NCBI GenBank assembly: GCA_964188305.1
Contig: OZ076895.1
Reading direction: 5' to 3' (one strand)
Origin: Podarcis bocagei
Lineage: Eukaryota
DNA: 64,000 bases
The notes under the pieces were generated by a model, which was not told where the DNA came from, searched no databases, and saw only the letters and a program-made list of their open reading frames with translations. The position numbers were made by a program, and so were the translations under genes. Positions 36,707-37,874 of the stretch are shown here, in pieces (position 1 is the stretch's first letter; every line of letters starts with the position of its first letter).

Positions 36707-36841
36707 AATACATTTCAAGTAAAGCATGTTCAGGCTTTGAGGCATTTAAATGAGCGACTGCTGACTGAGAATAGGGCCTTGACCAGAGTGGTTCCCAAGC
36801 TGTCAGGTGCCTGCAGGCATCGACATTCTGTGGACTTGTAA
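36707..36841 (+). CDS. PPP1R12A: Putative alternative C-terminal exon '25b' of MYPT1 (44 aa + TAA): [44 protein letters not shown]; candidate donor after 36886
   Basis: Pyrimidine tract plus ctgcag| phase-0 acceptor; [13 protein letters not shown] parallels [13 protein letters not shown] of exon 26 and the MYPT2 alternative C-terminus; ttca|gtgagt at 36886/36887. Confidence 0.75.
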   Translation, partial: [44 protein letters not shown]

Positions 36842-37874
36842 TTTCCCCTTTTCTTTTTTCTGTAGCTGGGCAGGTGTTGACTTTCAGTGAGTGTTATGGC
36901 CTGCATCTCTCACTATTAATGCTTGTGTGTCTGAAGACTGGCTTATTGCTTGACTATAAATTCAGCTTAAATACACAGTTTCCTGTATTCCAATTTTACC
37001 CTATTACTAACAGATATATTGATGTTGTTGTTTAGTTGCAAAGGAGTTCAGAAACTTTCACTTCCTCTTTTGAATAGCCACAGCTTTCCATGTTGTCTGG
37101 ACCAAGAACTGATTAATCCTAACTATGGCAAGTGTTAGATAAACCAGCTTTAGAAACTATGATTTGAAGCTGGCTTGTTTGAAACTAGCTGTAGTTGCTA
37201 TTAACCACAGTTTATCAGGGCATATGACATGGCCAACTGTAGTGAAGCAAAAAGCTTCCAAACACTTCCTCCCAGTTACACGGGAGGAGGAGAGGATAGG
37301 GATGGAATGCTTGAGCGTGAGGCTTATTGCGATACATTCATTTATCACGCTGTGCTGTGGTTTAGCATGGCATATGTATATGGTGAATGCATCCGTGTTG
37401 GCAGATTACTTTGATGTTAATCTGCGGGCCTTACTACCTACCACAGTTCAGAGATGCTCCGTTCCTTGGATATGTATAAGAATATTGAGGAGCTGAAAAA
37501 CTAAACCCTAATCTGAATAGTTGAATTGACACTTCACTGGAAGCTAAGTACTACATCTGAATATAAACTTACTGAAAAACATAAGACTCATCTGTGCTAA
37601 TTGGAAACCTCTGATACCAGCATACTACTTAAAGTGGAAAATGTCACAGGGTTGTGTTATCTTTCCCAAATTGTCATATTAAACTTTTTTTAAAAAAAAT
37701 TATTAACATAGTTATATACTCGGGTTCCATCAGAGTAGACTCATTGAAGTTGATGAGCATGACTAATTTAGTTCCATTAATTTTAATGGGTTTTCTCTGA
37801 GTAAAACTTAATTGAATAAAACCATCAGTACCAAGTTCTAGTTAGTGGTTTCAAAGCAATGTGTCAGATGATGA

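Follow-up and report, generated by a model that had tools for sequence, protein, structure and literature searches.

A probable alternative leucine-zipper exon in the last intron of lizard PPP1R12A, with counterparts in teleost fishes

The C-terminal leucine zipper of MYPT1, encoded by PPP1R12A, governs the response of smooth-muscle myosin phosphatase to NO/cGMP signalling. Two C-terminal states of the protein are described in the literature, and they are set by a 31-nt exon, for which a 13-nt variant exists in human (PMC9367544, PMC5087845). The locus analysed here raises the question of whether a lizard gene can encode a further one: in the window, a stretch of 64,000 nucleotides from Podarcis bocagei (contig OZ076895.1), the original prediction had placed a second zipper-coding exon between the constitutive exon named E25 and the normal last coding exon. 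We propose that positions 36707 to about 36886 are probably an alternative coding exon of PPP1R12A, orthologous to one of teleosts, which would be spliced after E25 and would replace the canonical 28-residue zipper by a 44-residue tail. The features on which this proposal is built are the following (a slash in a motif marks the splice junction):

35019-35069, plus strand: constitutive exon E25 (ERRALERRISEMEEELK), ending in phase 0, the upstream splice partner (sequence, protein match)
36683-36706, plus strand: putative acceptor and pyrimidine tract of the alternative exon, cctgcag/AA (sequence, crude weight matrix)
36707-36838, plus strand: coding part of the candidate alternative leucine-zipper exon, 44 codons (translation, Pfam, window scan, teleost tails)
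36839-36841, plus strand: stop codon TAA of the alternative exon (teleost tails, which end in ...DL, stop at the same alignment position)
36842-36886, plus strand: 3' untranslated part of the alternative exon up to a candidate GTGAGT donor (sequence, donor matrix)
40973-41059, plus strand: canonical last coding exon with the LZ+ zipper, 28 residues (sequence; PF15898, 51.2 bits)

The phase-0 frame of 44 codons occupies 36707-36838 on the plus strand, after E25 and before the canonical last exon at 40973, and joins E25 in phase 0. Its translation agreed with the earlier reading, and re-reading the sequence reproduced exactly the predicted exon coordinates, stop, acceptor and 36886 donor. Upstream of the exon lies the pyrimidine-rich sequence ctcctgtttctttgattcctgcag, with the AG at 36705-36706. 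Under a crude weight matrix, this acceptor ranked 5 of the 383 AG sites of the intron and exceeded the acceptors of three upstream constitutive exons, and the donor after 36886 was mid-range, ranking 21 of 333 sites in the intron. The GTGAGT begins at 36887, which gives an exon of 180 nt with 45 nt between the end of the stop codon and the donor. The peptide of E25 was identical or nearly identical to the corresponding stretch in two PPP1R12A proteins (P0002 and P0005). The same intron also carries simple repeats: a (TG)n at 35440-35465 and a long trinucleotide run at 37850-37960, the latter appearing in the list of open reading frames as poly-Leu or poly-Ile. Elsewhere in the window, G+C-rich islands occupy 22001-24000 (0.51) and 58001-60000 (0.62) against a background of 0.34-0.42, and the second of them may be the promoter island of a neighbouring gene.

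To gauge how closely the 44-residue peptide resembles a MYPT1 zipper, the entire 64 kb was scanned in six frames, the peptide of the last exon serving as query (BLOSUM62, local alignment). The alternative exon scored 54, the best unrelated match 33, and the background had a mean of 14.8 (sd 3.8), so that the true last exon and the alternative exon were the only MYPT1-zipper-like stretches in the window. Against the Pfam family PF15898 (PRKG1_interact), residues 4-33 of the peptide matched profile positions 71-100 of 101 with an E value of 2.7e-7 and 31.6 bits, the curated cut-off being 32.4; the full-length fish proteins that bear the corresponding tail also carry PF15898. In the translation, leucines follow each other at the seven-residue spacing of a leucine zipper (L11, L18, L25, and L32), N15, N22, and V29 occupy the a positions, and the Leu at d and the Asn at a stand in register with their counterparts in the canonical zipper. 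The predicted likeness to the normal last exon was borne out by the score of 54 against 33 for the next match and by the shared pattern N-x-RL...KLS. A search of PDB sequences with the peptide returned nothing relevant, and the ESM Atlas, queried with a fish tail, returned generic coiled-coil neighbours and PPP1R12B clusters only. Since this is the sole zipper-like stretch besides the last exon, aligns with the Pfam profile at a score slightly under its cut-off and has orthologues in teleosts, we regard 36707-36838 as no chance open reading frame.

The teleost orthologues were found by searching a library of representatives with the neighbouring constitutive exon at 31180-31284 (35 residues). 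Among the 56 matches, three (P0050, P0047, and P0044) ran from ...EMEEELK into a tail resembling that of the lizard exon; their source names are PPP1R12A of Pygocentrus and of Goodea and a hypothetical protein of Caranx. When the tails of P0050 and P0047 were used as queries, 28 and 114 proteins were obtained, all from teleosts and nearly all named "protein phosphatase 1 regulatory subunit 12A isoform X...", isoforms X1 and X5 of Danio rerio among them. One word-index search, within the fragment size range, gave a single teleost genomic open reading frame. Altogether, the alternative tail was present in 130 fetched teleost PPP1R12A proteins, in 43 distinct versions. The lizard peptide shared 27-31 of its 44 residues with teleost alternative tails, the best match being that of the early-branching Megalops (P0195, 31/44), and it equals the fish sequence at most of the positions that are invariant among them. 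In the alignment of the 43 tails with that of the lizard, the stop is in register and a Cys and the terminal DL are conserved; the lizard exon also conforms to the fish-type signature N-x-x-Q-V-K-x-V-Q-x-L-R...ERL-x-x-ENRAL-x-RV...C...DL-stop within 44-45 codons. Three positions at which the 43 fish tails never vary are changed in the lizard (L2T, Q7H, and A20T). The word-index searches gave no tetrapod protein with the alternative tail; their returns were confined to teleosts, so this absence says little. A partial PPP1R12A-like protein of the shark Rhincodon typus (P0051) ends in ...EMEEELKVNV, which looks like intron read-through at a contig end, and this fragment is uninformative on the exon in cartilaginous fishes.

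The genomic arrangement in fishes matched that of the lizard. The acceptor ctgcag/AAC and the phase were common to three teleost loci (L001, L002, and L003; ctgcag/AA in the lizard). The order in the seahorse Hippocampus (L003) was E25, alternative exon, and canonical zipper exon, as in the lizard, and in Goodea (L002) E25 was followed by the alternative exon and then by the end of the contig. Comparison of the lizard exon with two teleost exons, a check of the dN/dS type, gave a pN of 0.23-0.24, below the pS of 0.57-0.62; constitutive exons had a pN of 0.04-0.08 and so evolve more slowly than the alternative exon (0.23). Outside the exon, the likeness between lizard and fish flanks was not above that of shuffled sequence. 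A post-stop motif seemingly shared by lizard and fish, GTAG...GGCAGGTGTT, was rejected, its score of 16 lying close to the shuffled mean of 13.7 (maximum 24). The pattern is that expected of a coding exon under purifying, somewhat relaxed selection, with conservation that stops at the exon edges. We regard the lizard exon as orthologous to the alternative C-terminal exon of teleost PPP1R12A, and its age as at least that of the bony vertebrates. The 130 teleost tails and the fish exon order thus uphold the central part of the original prediction, an ancient, selectively maintained zipper-coding exon between E25 and the last exon. The accompanying idea, that this was an isoform of an unknown kind kept specially in reptiles, does not stand: RefSeq and UniProt models of fishes carry the tail routinely (Danio rerio isoform X1, for instance), so the lizard exon is not a new isoform class.

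The teleost exon (Danio rerio X1, P0078; Megalops cyprinoides X4, P0195) agrees with that of the lizard in gene, place, and phase, and the two share 44-45 codons, the heptad core, the ENRAL motif, the Cys, the position of the stop, and the final ...DL. The lizard differs in having T2, H7, H13, T20, T26, and P30, and the end of its tail is more basic than the teleost counterpart. In relation to the canonical last exon of MYPT1 (40973-41056; LZ+, binding PKG I-alpha), the alternative exon is paralogous and stands in the same intron-exon context. Both exons align with PF15898, the alternative one slightly under its cut-off, and have the pattern N-x-RL-x-x-EN-x-AL-x-RV-x-x-KLS in common; the alternative one has six more residues at the start and 11 after KLS, differs at about half of the zipper residues, and scores lower against the profile (31.6 bits versus 51.2). 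An alternative C-terminus of the paralogue PPP1R12B (MYPT2 B or hHS-M21 B) reportedly equals the lizard tail in length and has its ENRALTRVV...LS core.

Splicing of E25 to the alternative exon in phase 0 would supply the 44-residue tail in place of the canonical 28-residue zipper. Such a tail would retain the zipper core, with L11, L18, L25, and L32 at d and N15, N22, and V29 at a, and would have most of the surface residues altered, the 11-residue extension contributing the conserved Cys and, at the carboxyl terminus, ...V-D-L. Translation would end at the stop of the alternative exon, which would turn the canonical last exon into 3' UTR; if the alternative exon is terminal, the canonical one would be absent. 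In this scheme the variant zipper would keep the coiled coil and shift the choice of partner (PKG I-alpha, M20/M21, Par-4), and altered partner choice would most likely be the consequence of the swap.

Presumably the lizard splices this exon into mRNA, and the word content of sequencing runs gave a hint of its use. Words of the region 36600-37000 were found at shares of 0.75-0.76 in DNA-like runs (commonest species), of 0.32-0.35 in study P4 (same species), and of 0.41 in study P3 (another species); a contig holding only 36707-36886 is expected to give 0.40. For the words of 36793-37100, the P3 and P4 runs gave 0.29-0.32, with an exon-only expectation of 0.23 and about 0.75 in DNA. The assignment of the P3 and P4 runs to RNA is the guess of the tool, and word shares cannot reveal splice junctions; the exon-sized shares in these probable RNA runs hint at use of the alternative exon in the lizard.

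The 3' end of the exon allows several readings. Donor-like sites besides 36886 lie after 36806 (TGTCAG/gtgcct) and after 36873 (GGGCAG/gtgttg), and under the crude matrix all three score alike. With the donor after 36873, the exon would measure 167 nt and 32 nt would separate stop and junction; with that after 36806 it would measure 100 nt and would read into a frameshifted last exon (...VVPKLS+DATRPEGR, then a stop). It is thus quite possible, though less likely than not, that the exon is real and ends elsewhere, either as a cassette at one of these two sites or, if it is terminal, at a poly(A) site of its own. Poly(A) signals come closest at 37678 and 37815, 0.85-1 kb downstream. A CAG/GTG beyond the stop is found in the lizard and in three teleosts: following (T)AG, it lies at 36862-36879 in the window, at about 590-606 in L001, about 35644-35660 in L002, and about 25530-25545 in L003. 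Against such other ends, no site past the stop comes nearer to the donor consensus than the GTGAGT at 36887, the P3 and P4 word shares correspond to some 180-210 nt of sequence and not to a terminal exon of 1 kb, and lizard and fish flanks are not more alike than shuffled sequence; lizard and Goodea have GTAGnnnGGCAGGTGTT in common after the stop, in a flank alignment that does not rise above shuffles. The CAG/GTG is the first donor-like site past the stop in the three teleosts and stands 103-123 nt from it, compared with 32-45 nt from stop to donor-like site in the lizard, so the short distance is not conserved. Of the predicted stop close to the last junction, then, the arithmetic of the 180-nt cassette and of the 45-nt distance is correct, and the idea of a conserved design for escape from NMD finds no support in the teleost distances.

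Two other readings would deny the stretch a coding role in the living lizard. Under one of them, it is a relic, an ancestral alternative zipper exon that is still recognisable, is left unspliced in lizards and is drifting, as perhaps in mammals. The changes at three positions invariant in the 43 fish tails and the Pro at residue 30 could be read in this way, and among the 32 exons listed in a human PPP1R12A transcript survey there is no alternative zipper exon (PMC9367544). Yet the frame, acceptor, phase, stop, heptad core, and DL are intact after roughly 400 million years, flanked by intron without significant similarity between lizard and fish, and the probable RNA runs have exon-sized word shares. 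The Pro in VVPKLS, which had been suggested as a mark of decay, is weak evidence for it because fish tails themselves differ at residue 30, where they have A, S, Y, C, or V. We consider a relic unlikely. Under the other reading, the conserved stretch is an untranslated intronic element that controls splicing to the downstream zipper. Introns around the C-terminal alternative exon of MYPT1 are indeed reported to be regulated by Tra2-beta and MBNL, but the pattern here is a coding one: pN is well below pS, frame, stop, and heptads are kept, the similarity ends at the exon edges, and fish annotations translate the exon. A control element of this kind is very improbable. An alternative coding exon remains our preferred reading.

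E24, the classical LZ-minus exon known from birds and mammals, lies in the same intron and likewise sets the C-terminus (PMC5087845, PMC9367544). It differs from the lizard exon in mode: E24 has 31 nt and removes the zipper by a frameshift, whereas the lizard exon has 180 nt, is in frame, and would supply a variant zipper with its own stop. The 31-mer published for chicken and mouse (PMC5087845) had a best match of 18/31 in the lizard intron, within the 16-19 obtained with shuffled sequences, and under the crude matrix the rest of the intron held no convincing independent 31-nt AG..GT exon. Directly after the ...KLS codons, inside the alternative exon, there is a nested piece:

36807-36837, plus strand: 31-nt piece bounded by AG and GT and beginning at the donor-like site after 36806, a speculative LZ-minus counterpart

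It equals the classical LZ-minus exon in length and resembles the published chicken/mouse 31-mer no more than expected by chance. At the corresponding position, QSACSQ stands in the fish tail and VSGKSQ in the chicken/mouse exon as published. Spliced alone, 36807-36837 would read VPAGIDILWT, followed by YATRPEGR and a stop in the frameshifted last exon. That the 31-nt exon by which birds and mammals lose the zipper is a 3' remnant of an ancestral alternative zipper exon, with the lizard keeping LZ+, alternative-LZ, and LZ-minus forms, seems to us decidedly unlikely. If it were true, amniotes would have made a micro-exon that deletes the zipper out of an exon that swaps it. Loss of the alternative exon in birds and mammals, if it took place, could explain the source of their 31-nt exon.

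We found no description of a MYPT1 alternative zipper exon in the literature searched, the comparative study of Dippold and Fisher (2014) being outside the reach of that search. The tail is modelled in fish annotations and yet lacks a description in this literature. The comparison of lizard and fish sequences indicates that a third tail, one that swaps the zipper, has belonged to MYPT1 at least from the ancestor of the bony vertebrates onwards, and that its exon is still intact in a squamate.
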